A DNA stretch of 64,000 nucleotides from Oikopleura dioica (taxonomy: Eukaryota > Animalia > Chordata). Below are positions 11,278-33,800 of the stretch, piece after piece. Numbering within the stretch: position 1 is the first letter of the stretch; each line of letters opens with the position of its first letter. A program made the translations under genes and the position numbers. The stretch spans positions 744,001 to 808,000 of the forward strand of contig OU015568.1 in the NCBI GenBank assembly GCA_907165135.1. Direction: 5' to 3'. The notes beneath the pieces were generated by a model. It made no database searches and had not been told where the DNA came from. It saw only the letters and a program-made list of their open reading frames with translations.

Positions 11278-14200
11278 CTACTCTTCATTAAAAAAAGCGA
11301 ATACCCCGCCTAGAGCGCTACTAAGGAGTCTTTCAACTCCTCTTACCTCGTGACTCGGTCTCTTCTTTCGCTTTCTTCCAGTGTTTGCGGCCTTTTCTAG
11401 CGCCGAGAAGCCATTCGATTGATCTAATGAAGCGTCAAAAACTGCCTTGGAAAACGGTAACTCACTACCTTTGACAGCGAACTGAAGCCACTTCTGCAGG
11501 AGAGGTTTTAGTTTGCACATGTTCTTGAAGGAAAGTTGGAGGGCTTCGAATCGGCAAATGGTTGTTTGGGAGAAGACATTTCCGTAGAGGGTTCCAAGGG
11601 CAAGTCCAACATCAGCCTAGAACAATAAATAAGACAGCGGCCAAAAAAAAAACAGTAAAAAGATAATGATTCGAAGACCATAATAGGAAGGGCAGGTGTA
11701 AAATTGTGGATTAAATTTTTAAGTATCACTCGAAAGCTTATTTACTCCTTTATCACTCGATTCATCTAGCTTGAACATTTTACGTTTTTCTGTACAAAAA
11801 TGCAAGGCCACAATAAAAACCGCCTCTTTCAACTCTGACCACTCGGTTCGGCAGGGCTCGGTCGGGATTTTCCTTTATTGCGCTCAGCCGCAGCGCGATT
11901 CCGCATTATACTCCAGAGGTGGTCGCCCCCACCGACCCGATCTTTTTTGTGCTTTCTCAAATCTTATCGTCTGGATATTCGAAGCTCCGATATTCAAAAT
12001 CCTCCGGTATTGTTTTTTGGAGTCCAAAAGAAAAAGTCCCAACCGAGTTAAAAAAAGAAGGATGTTTTAAAGAGCGCGGAGAGCGGAATTTGCATTTTGA
12101 CATTTTAGTGAGTAAACAAAATGATTGCTCGCTGAATTTTTGATAAAATCGCCCCATAAACACACGAAAGGTCTTTTTACTTATTATGATCAATTGGTTT
12201 TTATGATGGTTTACCTGAGTGTAGCCAAGCTTGATTCGGCGCTGCTTGAAATCGCGGGCAAAGCCCTCGAGGTCGTCACTTGTCTTCTTTTAGCGATCAA
12301 CAATGAGCTAAGGGTATCACTTTCTTATGGTAAAGACATAAGAAAACTTCAAAAAAGGCTCAAAAAACTTTTGGTATTGAAAGTTAAGGGTGTCGCTATG
12401 ATAATTTTTCAGAAAAAAGTCGACTTAAATTTGTTGTTAACAATATCTACCCCCTTAATTTTTTAATAAAAGATTGTTGATCACTTTCCGGATTCGTCAT
12501 ATGATCTTCTGGGTGAACTCCATACTGGGCATATTGATCTGCATACTGATACGCATGCTGCTGGTAATACGGTAGGACGGATGGATGGGTACCCGGATGG
12601 CCAGGGCCAAAGGGATGAAGGGAAGAAAGAAAACTATGAGGATCGGTAGCGGAGACTGTTGAAGCTCCATGGGCAGAAGCAGCGGCGGCGGAGGAAAAAC
12701 CTGGGTACGAAAGAGAAGCAGCAGCGGCAGCTCTAGAAAAGGGATAAAAATGAGAAGGAAGAGGAAAGTCGTACCTAGAAGGATCAAGACCGGAGTAAAT
12801 ACTTGAAGAAGAAGGGTAGGGATAATTCCAGGCAGAGATTGACTGGGCAGTAGTCGGTGTATAACTTGATAAGGTGGAGGTCGTTATCTACAAATATTCC
12901 AAGTTACTGACCGAACAAACTTGATCGATTGCTTATCTACTGTGAGTGCTCCGATCGTCACTTTTCTCGAAAACTTACCGATGAGCTCATTGGAGGATTA
13001 TGACCAGTTGGGTCAATAGGGGTCAACACTGGGGAGGCGCTGGGTAGTTGTGGAGTGGAAATGGCAGAGCTAGAAACAGGCAGCGCAGATGGGGATGAGC
13101 TGAGCTCAGGCTGAGCAGGAGTGAGCTCGGAGCGGATGGTCGTCTCATCTGCTTCCACTTTGGGCTCCGTTTTGGGCAGATATGCGGCTTGGGAAGCGTT
13201 GTCGGGAGGCGTCTGGGAGAGGGAGGAAGTGCTCGAGCCAATGCCAGAGGAATTCGTTTTTTCCTAAAAAATAATGAATAACTCGAAGTTTTGATGATGT
13301 AAGAAGGTCCTTCGCTTCAAGATTTTTTACATCAATCAAAATCAGGTGCCCATTTGTATCCCACTCTAGAACTTTCTTTAGAGTTGTTCCTTGGGTTTGG
13401 GAGGATGGTAAAATAAATCATTGACTTTCAAAATGAAAAAAAATAGTCAATTTTTTTTATTTTTCTAAATTTTCGACTCGATGATTAATTTTACTAATTT
13501 TGGCCAAAAAGTACTAGAAGTTGATTTTTAATAAATCACGATTCGCAAATGTTCGTGTATCCAGCTGATCCTGAGCTAAGCGGGCGTGCATGTGGTGTTG
13601 TTGGTAGGGCGCGCTGAGGCTCTTTGCTAAACATCCGATTAGCATCCATTAGGCACTTCCGATTTTCACACCACGACGGGCACTTGGTTAGCGGAAATCT
13701 TTAATTTTATCCGCCCGCGAGTACCAGACCAGTCGAGATAGCGAAAATTACAAACTGCGCGAACTTGCAGAACTCGGACTAGGAAGGCCGGAAAGGGGTG
13801 ATTTGTAACGGGGGATTTTTGCCTGCTGAGATATGTGCACTATGGACATGAGGCAGGTATTTTGCTATTTTTTTACTTGGAGCCATTTTGAACTATCAAC
13901 ATCAGGAGATAGATTCGAAAGTAGACTCCGGAATTTGACAAATCTGGAGAGGGTAATTCTTTAGTAATCTTTGATTTTAAGCTTCATCTCAAAACTCGGG
14001 GTAAACTATAAATTCAAGTTCTAATTTTAAGTTTTATGGTCTCTCTTTTTCAAAATAAATTTTCCATTTCCAACTTCCAGAAAAACTTTGCACCGCCGAA
14101 AAAACACCAAAGCGCCAACATTTCCTGACGGAAGCGCTGACCAATTTCTTATCACCAAGTACAAGCGCGATTATCTTTCTCTCCTGCCGCGCCTGGGAAC

Positions 14201-25820: not shown

Positions 25821-26199
25821 TATAAAAGAAAAATAAGAAATTGAATTAGATCTTAACATTTTTGCTCAATAGAGTTTTCGAATTTCGGATATCTGTAACC
25901 GCTGTCTCGCCGGTTTATTTTTTAACCCTCTTCTATCTGCCAGTTAATTCAGATTTTGTCTGATCAAGTTTCCCCGCATTTTTAGTCACGGAAATCCCGA
26001 TTCTCGTCGACCTCCCCCCCCTTTGTTTGAAGATCGCATATTTTCAGTAAAAGTCAACAGATAAGTTTTTTTCACGAGTCATTTTTTATCATATTTTGGT
26101 CGAGATGGCAGATAAAAAAGCAGTTATAAGTCCAGAGAAACGAGAGATACCAGCAATTTATTTAGATGGAAATTACAGATTCACATCCTTTCACAATCA

Positions 26200-27228
26200 T
26201 GAGAAGGTGAAAGAACCAACATTCATTCACAAGTGCAGAATTTGCTCGTAAGTTCGGCGTGATGAAAAAAATTGTTTGGTTTTTTAGTGTTATTTCGGAA
26301 AAGTTCTTCATTCATGATTGTGGCGACTATTCAATCGAAAACAATGCATTTTGCGTGGATTGTTCGTCACAAATTACCCGAAAAAGAAGATGTCATTGTC
26401 GAGTTTACTTTTTCTCTGATCATTACACTCGCAAACATCGGAACCGCATCCGCTTCAAATGCTTCTTCATGGAATGTAACTCTTCTTTGTCTTTTTACGA
26501 ATTTCTCGATCATTATCAACAACGCGGATCTTCCGCTAATCACTTTCAACCTCGGTTTATGCAGAGCACTCAAGGAGCAAGTGCGCCAATTTTTCCTCGG
26601 ATAACTATTTCTTCTCGTGTAGGACATAATAATCGTGTCAGTCTTCCCGAGGATATTGAGAGGGATCTCAACCTCCGAGAAAACGAAGTGCAATCATTAA
26701 GGGGGTAGTGCCTGATTTGATGAAAATCAAGATTATGAAATATTAAAAAATTGTCAAACCACGAAAACCAGGCACTACCCCTTTAAGAAATCAGTTCGAA
26801 AAAATTTACTCGGAAGAAAAAACCGTTACCCAACAACTTGATACGGTTAAAAAAAAGATCATTGAGAATTCTTCGATGATTGAGAGTCTTCTACAGGAGA
26901 ATGACGGACTTACACGAGAAAAAGAAAGCCTTGAGAAAAAACTTGAAATGATAACAGAAAGAAAGGAGGAAGCTCGATATAAGCAAACTGATTTATCAGA
27001 TCAAGGTTCAACCAAATGTTTTAGATAAAATTCATTATTTTCAAAGGGGCCGACGAGAATTGCTGCAAGATCTGTTTCTCGACATTCGACAGAAATCTCC
27101 ATCACCAATCCTGCATAACCAGATGCTTTCATACCTTTTGCTTTCAATGTCTCAACTCTCTCAATCCGAAGAACTGTCCTAGCTGCAGACAGCCGTTTCA
27201 AATGTCCGAAATTCAAAAACTCTATTGA
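26200..27228 (+). CDS. N-terminal RING-like zinc finger + coiled coil + C-terminal C3HC4 RING; MITE in exon (possibly spliced)
   Basis: HKCRIC/SVISEKFFIHDCG...FCVDC...CHC; coiled coil 26788-27005; last exon 27047-27228 CCKICFSTF...CFHTFCFQC...CPSCRQPF. Start codon not resolved. Confidence 0.68.
26701..26782. mobile_element. 82-bp TTAA-flanked MITE with GG..CC-type ends (Kolobok-like)
   Basis: TTAA 26697-700 | GGGGGTAGTGCCTG ... CAGGCACTACCCCT | TTAA 26783-86. Confidence 0.82.
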
Positions 27229-27360: not shown

Positions 27361-29942
27361 TCACAAACAGTAAAATTGATCAACTTGAAATAAAATCGGT
27401 CGATAAAATATTTCAGTGTGTTCATTGACGATTTTCGAGCTTTCAATCTTGTCACCATCCCAAACGAGCTTTCGAACGATGCCTTTACTAAAGAAGAAAT
27501 CAATAAAGTTAGTCAAAGAAGAAAAAATTACGGTTCCTGATCGCCGTTTACAAGAAAGATTGAGTTTCCTATTTTGATTGAAGAAGAATGATTTTGCTAA
27601 AACAGATCGCGACAAATGAAAAAAATTAAAAATAAATTACCTTTTCCTCAGTTTGTCCGACGACTGTCCATTTTAAGGATCGAAAAAGGAAAATGTCATG
27701 ATTAATTCCATATCTCCAACCCCCCAAAACGAGCAGCCCATTTTCTACTCCAACACAGGTGTGAAATCCCAATTTTCTACAAATTCATTATATTTGAAAT
27801 AAGATCAATTTTACTTAGGAATATCCGGAAGTTTCTCCCAGTTTACGGAGTTGAAACTCTCAACCGTTCCATGAGCTGATTTATCATCGCTCGAAGTCCA
27901 ACCACCTACCGCAACTGGCCGGTTCCCATCAATCGCTAAGCACGAGTGCTTATGAACAACCAGTGATTCAGGGCGAGTTGTTACTATTGATCCATCAAAT
28001 TCCTCACATTTTTTGAAGGTATCGTCTTCAAAGCAGATTAAAACTATTGCTTAATTATTAAAAGTAATTTTTGATCATTAACCAGATTGTCTATCGGCCA
28101 TTGTAACTGCACTCGATCGATGATTAACAGAAATTCCGAGCTTTGTGGTCATTTCAATGATTTTGAAGTTCTCGAGCATTGAAATCTGAAAATTTATAAC
28201 TATATTCTAACTTCTGTAAAAAGCGTACCCTGTTTATGTATCCTGAATAACCACCAAAAATATATATTTTACCGCGAATAGATGCCGCAATAGAATTATA
28301 AAGATAGTGGCGATCATGAGTTGAGTCTGGTTTCTGTATTTGCAAATCTTTTTTTGTTCCATCATCATCAAGAAGATATTTGACTGCGCCTTTGGTTCCA
28401 GCAAGAACAAACAGTGCATTTTTCATCATTTTGACGCAGTCAGGTTTTGTTTCTTCAAGCTTCAGTTTTGTAGTCGTTAGTTCTAGTGTTTCTATAATTG
28501 AAGACTTCTCGTAAGTACAATTTTGATTTTCATCCAAAAGATCTCCAACAACCCTCTTAAGCGCTTCCGTCTTGTCTTTTTCCTGGCCGATTTCATTAAT
28601 TCGTATTGAAATTTCAGATTCAAAGTTTTGTTGCTTTTCGACAATGTTTGCTTCGAGACGGAAAATTTCCTCACTTTTTTCGTCTTTCTCTGCGGCGCAT
28701 TTTTGATTTTCCTCAAGACTTCTCTCAATCAAATTAGTAAGGTTTTGATTTCTGTTTCTTTCTTCATCGAGCTCCGCAATTTTTTCATCGAGTTTGTCTT
28801 TATTATCTGTCAATTTTTCTTCGAACGAAAACTGCGTAAGAGTCGCATTAGTCAGGGTAATTTCTAGCTAATTTTCAAGCTGAGCATTTTTTGACTGAAG
28901 ATCGTGAACTTGTCTTGACAGGATTTTCACCCGCGAGATCAGTGAAGAAACTTCCTTCCTGAAACTTGAGTTTCTGCTTTCTTGTCTAGATCTTTTCAGT
29001 TGAAGATTTTCTGATTCTAGCTCTTCTCCGCGGCTAGGTTATCATTATTTAACAAGTAAAAGGTCTATCATACAGTTGACAAATTTCTTTATCGACTTGA
29101 GCTCGTTCAGATATTTTGTAAAGATTAATTATTTCCGACATCAATTTTTCCCTTTGAAATATTAAGTTTCGGACCTCTTGTTTCTGTTTGCCCATCAATT
29201 GTCTTTTTCAAAGTTCAAATAACAAATCAAAGGGTTAAGGGGGTAGAAACAGCTTTCTCGATTATGGACAGCAGCTGCATAAAAGTAAACATAAGATTTA
29301 TTTATGTTCACGGAATTTCCTGATAAATGTTCCTAGAAAAAGGGTTCAGCTTCACAAAAATGTGAAAGAAATTTGTTTAACTATCAGGGGACTCGAGATA
29401 TACGTGTTTAAAAATTTGGGAAAATCGAGAATTTCAGAGAGATGAGCTGCTTCTGAGCCCGCTTACTCAAAAATTTGATGACGAAAAAAAATTTCGAGAG
29501 AGATGTTCCTAGATCTAAGATGCATCTTTCGTAACCTGAAGAGAAAATTTGAAAATGTAAGATTCTCTTGTCTGTAGCGCCGGTCAAAAATCGTTTTTTT
29601 CAGAAAAAAGCTGTTTCTACCCCCTTAACGCAAAATTTGAAATAATTATAAAAATATTTCGGTATAATAAAAAATTTCAATTTCTGAACTTTAACGACAT
29701 TGAGCTAAATCAACTGATGGTTGAAAATTTCGCGCTTGAGTTTTATTATTATCATCGCAGAGACAATCGTTAAGCTGATGTTCTATCCGCTGCTTGCAGA
29801 TTTGAATGCACTCAGAATCAAAGCATCTACTGTTACAAAGCAAAAAACCAGCTTGAGCTGTTTCTTTGCATCTTGCCGAAGATTCGGGAGTGCATGACTT
29901 TCCAGCAGTTGTGTACCAAAGAAAAAAGAGAAATCTTATCAT
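27361..29942 (-). CDS. Secreted protein: signal peptide, Cys-rich module, long coiled coil, Kelch-like propeller
   Basis: MIRFLFFLWYTTA; CxxxC-rich exon; 28154-28813 heptad-rich ORF leading to IYIFGGY; later exons with VAVGGW, TVESF..WEKLPDIP; stop 27361. Confidence 0.62.
29239..29624. mobile_element. 386-bp TTAA-flanked non-autonomous element (Kolobok-like)
   Basis: TTAA 29235-38 and 29625-28; perfect 18-bp TIR GGGGGTAGAAACAGCTTT; intronic. Confidence 0.85.
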
Positions 29943-30675: not shown

Positions 30676-30812
30676 AAATTTCAGAATAAAAAATTCAGGA
30701 TAATTAAGCTATACAAATTTGCATTTATTGATGAACATTATTCGTCGATTTTTGATAAATACAGTGCTTGAGATAATTTTCATGTTCGTTTGAGGTAATT
30801 GAAAGAAAATGT

Positions 30813-33800
30813 TCAAACAAGGCAAGGTTTGTTTGTTGGCGAATGTAGAGTTGGCAGGAGCGGTAGGCGAGTTCGGTTCTGCTTTCCGGAACTGTTGTTT
30901 CCGGAAGACGTTGTATGCGAGCTGTAGTCGGATGTCCGCTCCCAGACGTATAATGAAGACACCTGAAAAACAAGGGATTAATCAATTCGTTCAATAGAGA
31001 ATATTGTAATTTCGTATTCCAAAATGAGACTGTTCTAGATGGTTACCTGGTTGATTTTGTCGGAAACATCGACTTCAAAAGGCTTCGAGGACGAATTTGA
31101 TGGAAGCCAGCAAGCATCAGAGTGGCCAAGGGTTAGACAGTCTTGATTACAGTAATGACCAAGCATCGCCAGCTGAAAAGAGGGTTACTAGAATTCAAAG
31201 CAAAAATGAGGATTATAAACCCAAAATCTGAGTCAAAAATAGTTCAATTTTCAATTCATCTATTTTTCTATCTTATTTTGTCAGTTTTCTTCCTTGATTT
31301 CAAAACTCACATGATTTCTTGATTGCGTTTCGCTCCCAGATTCGCCTCTCCCCGAGTCCGAATCCGCCCTTCTGGAATTACTCTTCTGGTTCATCTGCAA
31401 AGCTCCCCTGGCCGTACAAATCGTTCCCTCGCTGCCACTCCTCTCCGATTTCATCTTCATGTCAATGATCAAATCCGTGCGCGAAATATTCTGCGAGTTC
31501 GCGGAATTATCCCCGAAATTCGACGAATTCATTTTGTCGTTGTGCGCAGCGCGGAGCCGCCGCTGGAGGAAAATGAAGACAACGATGAGAATGAAAATTC
31601 CAGCAACAGCTGCGACGGCGCCGATGATAGCCGCGGAAATAGCCGCGCTGACGGTGATTTCGTATTCCATTGCGACGGAGGTGTTTTGGCCATCGTAGAC
31701 CTATAATATTTGATGATTTTTTTCTAGATTTTTTTTATCAAAAATCATAAAAGAAAAAAAATTCTGAAGCGCAGGAAATATCAAACTAATAAAGAGTTGA
31801 GATCCACTTGACAATATCTGTAACCATAGTTAGAATGGAACTAAGAATAAATTGTATTTATGTCAGTCAATTTCTTTGATAAAAAAAAAATGAAAAAGAC
31901 CCTATTTGATGGCCTCAAATACCGTGAGTGTAATTTCCGCATCCAAATCGCGCGAATAATTCGACTCGAAAATCAAGTCGTGGCCACGAAGCGCGAATAA
32001 TTCTGCATCTCTTCCTCCAAGTTGAATGACTGGTTCTGTTCCATCTGCGTCAGAGATCTAAAATTGCCTATTACAAAACCTGTTTTAAAAATTGAAATAG
32101 AGTCTGGAAAAATATATAAAATATGTTTCAAAAAAAAAAAGAGAACGGCGACCATTAAAAATGTCCCAAAATCCTCCTTGTTCGGCGATGTCGATTTTCT
32201 CAGAGTGTTTTTGTTTCTCACATTGGCATTTGCCTCAACTAGATTCCTCGGTGGCTCTTTTCATTCGGAGAAGAGTCCCTTAGCAGAATTCGAAAATAGT
32301 GGCGGGCGGATAATAACGTAAAGCATTCCCACGAGAAAATGGCTTATGCGCCGCTCCCGCCATTAACAATCGGACTATACTTTTCCACAACAATCGCATC
32401 TTTAAACTTGACCAAAGTTTACGAAGAAAAAGTACTCCCAACAAAACGTGTCGATAAAAAACGATTTTTGAATCTTAATTTCGGATCCAGGAGCAATTAT
32501 GGAATCACCCTAATTTTCTATTCAAATTTGCCTTCGAAAAATATCCTGCTTTTTAGTTTTTTGGCAAAATAAAATAAGGGTGTCACCATCTTATTTAACG
32601 CTTCGTCTGACGGATCGAATAAGGGTATCACTATCTTAAGTTTGTCTATCAAAAGAAGGGTCAGTTGAAGGAAGAATCAAGTTTTGATCGATTTTTTTCG
32701 AAGAAATAAGATAGTGACACCCTTATTTTAGTTTGTCATCATTTTGGAATGAACTGTAAGAAAAGCTTTCATATTGTCTTGATCCCCTAAAAAACAGAAT
32801 AACAAGTCGAAAACGTGATAATTTTAAAATATCTAAGCCGCCGATTACATTTTCGCCCATAAATATGCTCGGCTATATCCTGTTACATAGTCTTTTCCTG
32901 AATATTCACCAGCAGCAGTGATGTATGTTTTCAACCGCCCAAGTGAGTTTTAACACATTTTCTCCCGAAAAAGAGCGGCGATAAGCAAGAACTTTGAAAG
33001 CTGCTTATTGAAGTTTATTCAGGAATTAAAATGGAGCGTGTTCATTTAGAGACTAATAAGCGCTCTAAAAGAACTTGTGCAAGGAATAACAATTCCAGCC
33101 GCAAGCTCGACCGCTCTTTGTGTCTCACTCGCTCATTTTAATACACCTGTGGGGAGAAAATACAACTCATTTTCAAGCAAACAAAAAATTCTTAAGGAGA
33201 ACTATTTTGCTCTAAGCTCGCCTCTAATTATTTCATGCTGGGTTCTTATTCAGTAATGTAAATTTCAGCCAAATTTGGATTTCATGAGAGCTGCATTTTT
33301 TCAGTATTCTGAAACATTTGAAGAATCTTTCAAAACTATTTATGACTAAGAAGAGTTAACTTTTTATGGTGCTGAAAAACTCTTTTTATTGGCATTGCCA
33401 CCATTGGTCAGAAAAAATTGCGCATTTAAACATTTACAAATCATTTTAACCATTATAAGATATTATAAATTCTCATTTCGAAAATGTATTTTATGGTTAT
33501 TTAAAATAAAACCTGAGGTTATTTGAGAACTAGAAACTTTTTGATAGAATACCTAACCTCAAAAGTTCCTATCCCTAACCCTAACCCCTAACCCTAACCC
33601 TAACCCTAACCCTAACCCTAGATTCTAGGGCCTAGAATACCTAACCTGAAAAGTCCCTAACCCTAACCCTAACTCTAACCTCAAAAGTCGAAATAACATC
33701 TCCAAACTGAACATCACTCGCCAGCGCAATGTATTTCGGAATCACGGCCACAGGTCGATTGTCGTTGACATTCTGCACTTGAATCTTCACCAGTCCTTTG

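Follow-up and report, generated by a model that had tools for sequence, protein, structure and literature searches.

What becomes of a gene when a transposon inserts into its coding sequence and brings an in-frame stop codon with it? The question is raised by a locus in the chordate Oikopleura dioica, where an 82-bp MITE occupies positions 26701-26782, by a reading of the sequence, inside exon 2 of a gene encoding a Cys/His-rich domain, a coiled coil and a RING. The window, meaning the whole stretch of DNA that was analysed, is 64,000 nt long and corresponds to C1:744001-808000 of the assembly searched (64,281,565 bases in 19 pieces). The element probably gave rise to an old intron, one that is spliced out in frame and has since then been an ordinary fixed intron. 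The features on which this argument draws are listed below; percentages are identities between the window and a metagenome (sister) lineage introduced further on.

26105-26247, plus strand: exon 1, starting at ATG 26105; open reading frame with a GTAAGT donor; 92% identity to the metagenome orthologue, dN/dS 0.11.
26248-26287, plus strand: intron 1, 40 nt, GT-AG; 82%.
26288-26704, plus strand: exon 2 up to the proposed donor, with the Cys/His-rich domain and the start of the coiled coil; drawn from the open reading frame, the paralogues and protein P0001; 96%.
26697-26700, no strand: left TTAA of the target-site duplication, from the sequence and a repeat finder; kept in both lineages.
26701-26782, no strand: the 82-bp MITE, with TIR cores at 26701-26714 and 26769-26782.
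26706-26708, plus strand: in-frame TAG made by the element; the same stop terminates P0001 in the sister lineage.
26783-26786, no strand: right TTAA of the target-site duplication; replaced by CAAA in the sister lineage, where the next G is unchanged.
26705-26787, plus strand: proposed intron, GT-AG, 83 nt, adding one Gly; from pair enumeration, with GT at 26705-26706 and AG at 26786-26787.
26702-26787, plus strand: alternative candidate intron, GG-AG, 86 nt, leaving no scar; its removal would restore the ancestral message exactly.
26788-27005, plus strand: exon 3, coiled coil; no stop or indel difference between lineages; paralogues join exon 3 directly to exon 2; 85%.
27006-27046, plus strand: intron 3, 41 nt, GT-AG, with an AAG acceptor; 71%.
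27047-27228, plus strand: exon 4, C3HC4 RING, stop codon at 27226-27228; Pfam matches; dN/dS 0.06; 93%.

What kind of gene is the host? An earlier note on this DNA had called it a RING/coiled-coil gene, and this description stands: the last exon has C3HC4 cysteine spacing and matches Pfam zf-RING_5 and zf-C3HC4_3 at E 1.5e-5, slightly short of the curated cut-offs, and exon 3 encodes a coiled coil. The acceptor assigned to intron 3 is the sole one that yields the RING frame. A Pfam search with the Cys/His-rich N-terminal part matched no family. The gene belongs to a lineage-specific family of at least 15 members, in which a Cys/His-rich N-domain is followed by a coiled coil and, at the C-terminus, a RING, and which lie partly in a tandem cluster (C1:5.538-5.547 Mb and other loci, L014-L032); one paralogue, L015, has no intron preceding the RING exon. 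In a word-index search of a 5.8-billion-protein set, no relatives of the family were found besides the metagenome orthologue.

What inserted, and where? The element and its flanks are laid out in the window as ...TCA TTA A|GGGGGTAGTGCCTG...CAGGCACTACCCCT|TTAA G AAT CAG..., the host G directly after the right TTAA being position 26787. The TIR cores match at 13 of 14 positions. With the flanking TTAAs included, the repeat finder reports an inverted repeat with arms of 22 nt (26697-26718 and 26765-26786) that are 91% complementary, and in the 64-kb window the 13-nt core GGGGTAGTGCCTG is present in just two places, one per strand, against an expectation of 0.13. The TTAA duplication, the TIRs, the small size and the absence of coding capacity identify a TTAA-targeting (piggyBac-like) MITE. 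The upstream frame runs from 26259 to the TAG at 26706-26708 and has the C-terminal sequence ...NEVQSLRG. The earlier note had described an 82-bp element with TIRs and a TTAA duplication that, if unspliced, halts translation at 26706-26708; every coordinate proved right on re-reading, and the TAG indeed follows ...QSLRG.

The state of the site before insertion is preserved in the paralogues. The genome search found at least 15 of these, with the match to the exon-2 piece spanning residues 1-138. In several, the match to the end of exon 2 abuts the match to the start of exon 3 base for base; for example, an exon-2 match at C1:5780656-5781042 lies beside an exon-3 match at 5780458-5780655, and one at C1:5542916-5543290 lies beside 5542727-5542915. 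Five paralogues are uninterrupted across the site, reading VQSMRN(E/K)FEKI in open frames ...DIERDLNSRENELQSMRNEFEKIY.... Since the paralogues are contiguous here, the element inserted in coding sequence, and there was no older intron at the site. The paralogue frames also imply that the ancestral residues were Leu-Arg-Asn-Gln, encoded by TTA AGA AAT CAG, and hence that the target was TTAA followed by G. The ancestral L-R-N-Q that had been proposed from the window is thus in agreement with five genes of the same genome that read through the site.

How old is the insertion? A word-index protein search with exon 2 returned a single protein, P0001, a sequence of 144 aa with 94% identity that terminates at the same ...SLRG stop. 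P0001 and the next open reading frame, P0002, were located on four marine-metagenome contigs, each from a separate assembly. Over 3.2 kb, the DNA of the contigs is 89% identical to the window, and the contigs differ from one another by ~1.2%. In the metagenome lineage, a segment matching window 30707-31751 (L034:11-1067) is inverted and sits immediately upstream of the gene, whereas in the window it is 4.7 kb away; the rearrangement breakpoint is near window 26021. The level of identity, the inverted upstream neighbour and the small mutual difference together indicate that the contigs represent a separate lineage. The element is present at the identical site in 4/4 contigs, which are identical to one another there. 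Because the element is common to both lineages at one site, the insertion predates their split. Between the lineages, dS is 0.32 for exon 1, 0.54 for exon 3 and 0.36 for exon 4 (Nei-Gojobori), and the flanks are 78-81% identical.

The element itself has changed unevenly. A gapped alignment of the two lineages has 15 differences in 82 nt, 14 of them within the 40 nt at the centre and the other at the edge of this centre; that no more than one difference should fall in the outer 42 of the 82 positions has a probability of 1e-4, or 0.006 for the right arm alone. This comparison, like the other conservation arguments, draws on one lineage pair. That the left arm is perfectly conserved is no evidence for a role of the hairpin that the element is predicted to form (see below), because this arm runs on from a near-invariant block in exon 2. 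Window 26319-26558 has only 2 differences in 240 nt (dS 0.06), and the block reaches 26720, including the left repeat; synonymous constraint or a recent exchange of the segment are possible causes. An exact-pattern scan of JGI metagenomes with the left repeat gave no match. One JGI contig (L102) matched a 20-mer from exon 2; it was otherwise without similarity to the window and was set aside as a chance match.

The insertion is most likely old and fixed, not fresh. The earlier note had suggested that the element was caught shortly after insertion, and had proposed a search for an empty-site allele. The first suggestion does not fit an insertion shared with a lineage at dS 0.3-0.6 (exons 1, 3 and 4) and altered at 14 of 40 central positions; as for the second, all four metagenome contigs of the diverged lineage are occupied and none is empty.

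Is there still a gene downstream of the stop? The simplest view of an in-frame TAG is that the gene is broken, with the element never removed, translation ending at 26706-26708 and the downstream sequence decaying. The TAG is present, the splice signals are weak and fall within a strong predicted hairpin, and protein searches, for which the queries were exon 2 alone and a paralogue-ORF alignment with the exons as separate rows, recovered only the two open-reading-frame pieces P0001 and P0002; neither of the two word-index searches returned a full-length or transcript-derived protein. Yet the downstream exons are under purifying constraint in both lineages, each of which has the element. By the Nei-Gojobori method, dN/dS is 0.19 for exon 3 (dS 0.54) and 0.06 for exon 4 (dS 0.36), and neither exon has gained an indel or a stop between the lineages despite this divergence. 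For the two exons jointly, the excess of synonymous over non-synonymous change has a Fisher P of 9e-10. A broken gene is thus left with a very low probability.

A second possibility is that the locus makes two products: the upstream part would end at the TAG, and the coiled-coil/RING part would be made separately, for example by SL trans-splicing at the AG followed by initiation at an internal AUG. Oikopleura does use operons and trans-splicing (PMC4122922), and in the window there is an in-frame ATG at 26876. However, this codon is ACG in the sister lineage, where the frame runs into a TGA within the element and next meets an ATG only at 26948; yet the first 52 codons 3' of the element, which precede that ATG, have a dN/dS of 0.11 (P 5e-6). 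Separate products are very unlikely. Codons that are under selection, have no start of their own and lie behind an in-frame stop must join the upstream frame, and splicing is a simple route by which they could do so. We infer from these comparisons that the element is removed from the message.

Which splice sites would achieve this? G(N)...AG pairs near the element were enumerated, requiring that they be in frame and stop-free, and each was checked in the sister lineage. GT 26705 with AG 26787 is the sole canonical pair that retains all ancestral residues. As the earlier note had it, the GT comes from the element, and the AG from the duplicated TTAA together with the G beside it; the note's arithmetic also holds, in that taking out the 83 nt of 26705-26787 joins the frames as L-R-G-N-Q, with no stop after joining. 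There are further in-frame GT-AG pairs, among them GT 26688 with AG 26794, whose use would cost seven conserved residues. The GG-AG alternative at 26702 would be in keeping with the permissive splicing of this species: the O. dioica assembly OKI2018_I69 has a median intron of 49 bp and 11% non-GT/AG introns (PMC8008620), and G(N)-AG introns make up 11-12% (PMC8008620, PMC4122922). The exact sites proposed here are putative, being read from DNA.

The proposed donor, GTAGTG, is weak, and the proposed acceptor is AAG. An AAG acceptor is also present at intron 3 of the RING gene, and ...TTAAG| acceptors are found in a gene of tandem EGF repeats, at three of the repeats; at one of these three, the TTAA is occupied by a copy of the transposon family. 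This copy, 386 bp long (L052, G000:C1:3174606-3174999), is inserted at a native ...TTAAG| 3' splice site, on its TTAA, where the duplication re-creates CCCCCTTAAG| ahead of the exon; sister repeats have ...CTTAAG| and ...GTTAAAG| at this position. In a crude self-trained matrix, the MITE donor and acceptor score at least as high as the sites of intron 3 in the RING gene. These scores are given little weight because the training set, consisting of ORF-bridging GT-AG candidates in the window, was contaminated when seeded, and unseeded training converged on coding-like noise.

When transcribed, the element is predicted to form a hairpin of -34.5 kcal/mol, with a stem of 14-18 bp and a z of -7.6, and the predicted energy is identical in the sister lineage. 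An Rfam scan of the element gave only generic hairpin matches far under threshold, with no known RNA family or mirtron-like precursor. Both proposed splice sites fall within the predicted stem. Such a stem could impede splice-site recognition; alternatively, by analogy with other introns that end in repeats (PMC11282704), it could draw the intron ends together.

Could the element be removed from DNA rather than from RNA? A piggyBac-type transposase might excise it in somatic cells and restore the TTAA, as happens with the internal eliminated sequences of ciliates. Such a mechanism would suit the conservation of both repeats around a drifting centre, and the genome does contain two matches to piggyBac-type DDE transposase (PF13843), at C1:539284-540003 and C5:1088671-1089363. 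These matches are short fragments, however, one with two stops, and a search within 1.5 kb of either found no GGGGGTAG ends. In addition, the element is present in all the metagenome and assembly DNA. GT, GG and AG are unchanged in both lineages, the first codon past the AG differs synonymously (AAT in the window, AAC in the sister lineage), and the right TTAA has become CAAA. Retention of the AG while the right TTAA decayed fits a 3' splice site and not the TTAA requirement of a transposase. Removal at the DNA level is extremely unlikely, and splicing of an old MITE-derived intron is the reading pursued here.

Where did the element come from? A genome search with the 82-bp sequence found no second copy, and the count of the full 17-nt element end in the genome is not above that of a control. 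The terminal motif TTAAGGGG(N)TAG occurs 443 times in the genome, compared with 46 for the reversed control, and many of the matches form plus/minus pairs ~385 bp apart. Sixty chromosome-1 sites yielded 32 complete elements, two of which, the 82-bp element and a 386-bp copy, are in the window, and all 32 are flanked by TTAA. They fall into several sub-families that have GGGGGTAG in common and then diverge. One sub-family, of 675-1435 bp with ends GGGGGTAGTCC(C/T)(T/C)GCTTTTG, can be aligned with the 82-bp element for ~45 nt on the left and ~37 nt on the right, and since both ends align, the 82-bp element is an internally deleted relative of this sub-family. The longest such relative found is a non-autonomous, TTAA-flanked element of 1435 bp with ends GGGGTAGTCCCTGCTTTT (L033, G000:C4:4246652-4248086). 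Family ends begin GGGGG; canonical piggyBac ends begin CCC.

There are other traces of the family in the window. A 386-bp MITE at 29235-29628, 2.4 kb off, has a TTAA duplication and the TIR GGGGGTAGAAACAGCTTT and belongs to another sub-family, the most abundant one, with dozens of copies of equal size on chromosome 1. A solitary family end, CTACCCCCTTAA, lies at 12447-12458, with a possible degenerate partner, TTAAGGGTGTCGC, ~70 bp upstream.

Does the family generate introns as a rule? The earlier note had supposed that any insertion of this family at TTAAG is a ready-made intron and that the element may be an active intron generator. The arithmetic of the first idea is sound: for a five-G end at TTAAG, GT-AG removal replaces TTAAG with TTAAGGGG, a net gain of three bases (GGG), whatever the length of the element. 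The chromosome-1 sample did not yield a second case, however. Family ends are followed by G in 94 of ~400 instances (5 for the control), which is about a quarter and no more than base composition predicts. The comparison of family copies with exons that the earlier note had called for was run on chromosome 1, where 17 ends are flanked by TTAAG; long open frames are bridged only by the 82-bp element (164 and 79 codons), and none of the other 16 bridges at least 40 open codons on both sides, the next best having 20-31 on the shorter side. Whatever the flanking base, sampled copies on chromosome 1 lie in long open frames about as frequently as random TTAA sites do. None of the 31 other sampled chromosome-1 copies clearly splits an exon; one is in an older intron and one is on a native 3' splice site. 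The copy in the older intron (L063) had been a candidate for a second exon insertion and was dismissed on account of its AAT|GTAAGT donor.

A young insertion of an active family, forming an intron wherever it lands at TTAAG, is accordingly hard to sustain, even though the family is abundant and the frame arithmetic is valid for any five-G end. A diverged lineage also has the 82-bp copy, with 14 changes in the 40 nt of its centre, the 82-bp form is unique in the genome, the G after the duplication is not enriched, and the chromosome-1 ends include no other exon bridge (0/16). Such an origin is highly improbable, and the 82-bp element does not have the marks of an active intron generator: its form is single-copy, and the chromosome-1 scan gave no other case. 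A strict definition of an introner family demands many near-identical intron copies in unrelated genes, which are not what was found. Hence, the locus is classed as a single old transposon-derived intron.

There is a bolder reading, which we regard as doubtful: the GGGGGTAG/TTAA MITEs of O. dioica may be true chordate introners, with repeats selected for the hairpin, and this locus may be an old survivor. If so, every landing at TTAAG would, through the five-G end, be either frame-neutral (GT-AG, adding GGG) or scarless (GG-AG), and after fixation the hairpin joining both splice sites would be required for removal of the intron.

The course of events that probably explains the locus is that of a single old intron. 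A short, internally deleted, TTAA-targeting MITE would have inserted at TTAAG, across Leu-Arg codons, in exon 2 of a lineage-specific RING gene, after the gene's origin by duplication and before the split of two present-day Oikopleura lineages. The insertion would have survived because the pre-mRNA could be spliced. The 5' splice site would be formed by the element's fifth and sixth bases (GGGG|GT), and the 3' splice site by the pyrimidine-rich right repeat together with the final A of the TTAA duplicate and the adjoining host G (CCCCTTTAAG|). Removal of 83 nt would keep the frame intact and add one glycine; use of the GG at 26702 would give back the original message. Later, the centre would have drifted and the right TTAA decayed in one lineage, with both ends and the AG retained.

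What are the implications of this locus? First, the origin of new spliceosomal introns is a long-standing question, and clear examples in animals are few. Second, each step is preserved here: the pre-insertion state in the paralogues, the donor family still in the genome, and the duplication that appears to have been co-opted as an acceptor. Third, the two lineages suggest that selection maintains the ends and the AG but not the centre or the TTAA. Fourth, the locus could be used to ask whether terminal hairpins promote or impede splicing, in an organism known for permissive splice sites. It is one well-dated case, and the mechanism is not new.

Indeed, there are several known systems with which it can be compared. 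According to PMC11282704, the introners of Micromonas and Aureococcus (Huff et al. 2016) take their donor from the element and co-opt their AG from the duplication, and like the present element they are non-autonomous DNA transposons, with TIRs and a target-site duplication, lying in exons. Each of their families comprises hundreds to thousands of near-identical introns, whereas the 82-bp form is single-copy; almost all the sampled relatives of the Oikopleura element lie outside coding sequence, and its duplication is TTAA, with one host base needed for the AG. Oikopleura is absent from the main text of an introner survey of 3,325 genomes (PMC9860276). The non-conventional introns of euglenids also have TIRs that pair in RNA, conserved ends and a variable interior (PMC11282704), but they have no spliceosomal signals and leave as circles, whereas the Oikopleura element has a GT, a pyrimidine run and an AG. 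Another case is that of the MITE-derived introns of Fritillaria borealis (Henriet et al. 2019), a member of the same animal class; as described in PMC11282704 and PMC13326754, these have TIRs and duplications at their borders and occupy lineage-specific positions. The Fritillaria introns are mostly AG-AC or AG-AT and need an altered spliceosome, unlike the candidate intron here, which would be GT-AG, or G(N)-AG as is found in O. dioica. Transposon insertion as a route of intron gain is also on record for Oikopleura itself: it is tabulated in PMC3443670 from Denoeud et al. 2010, with species group and proposed route both as here.
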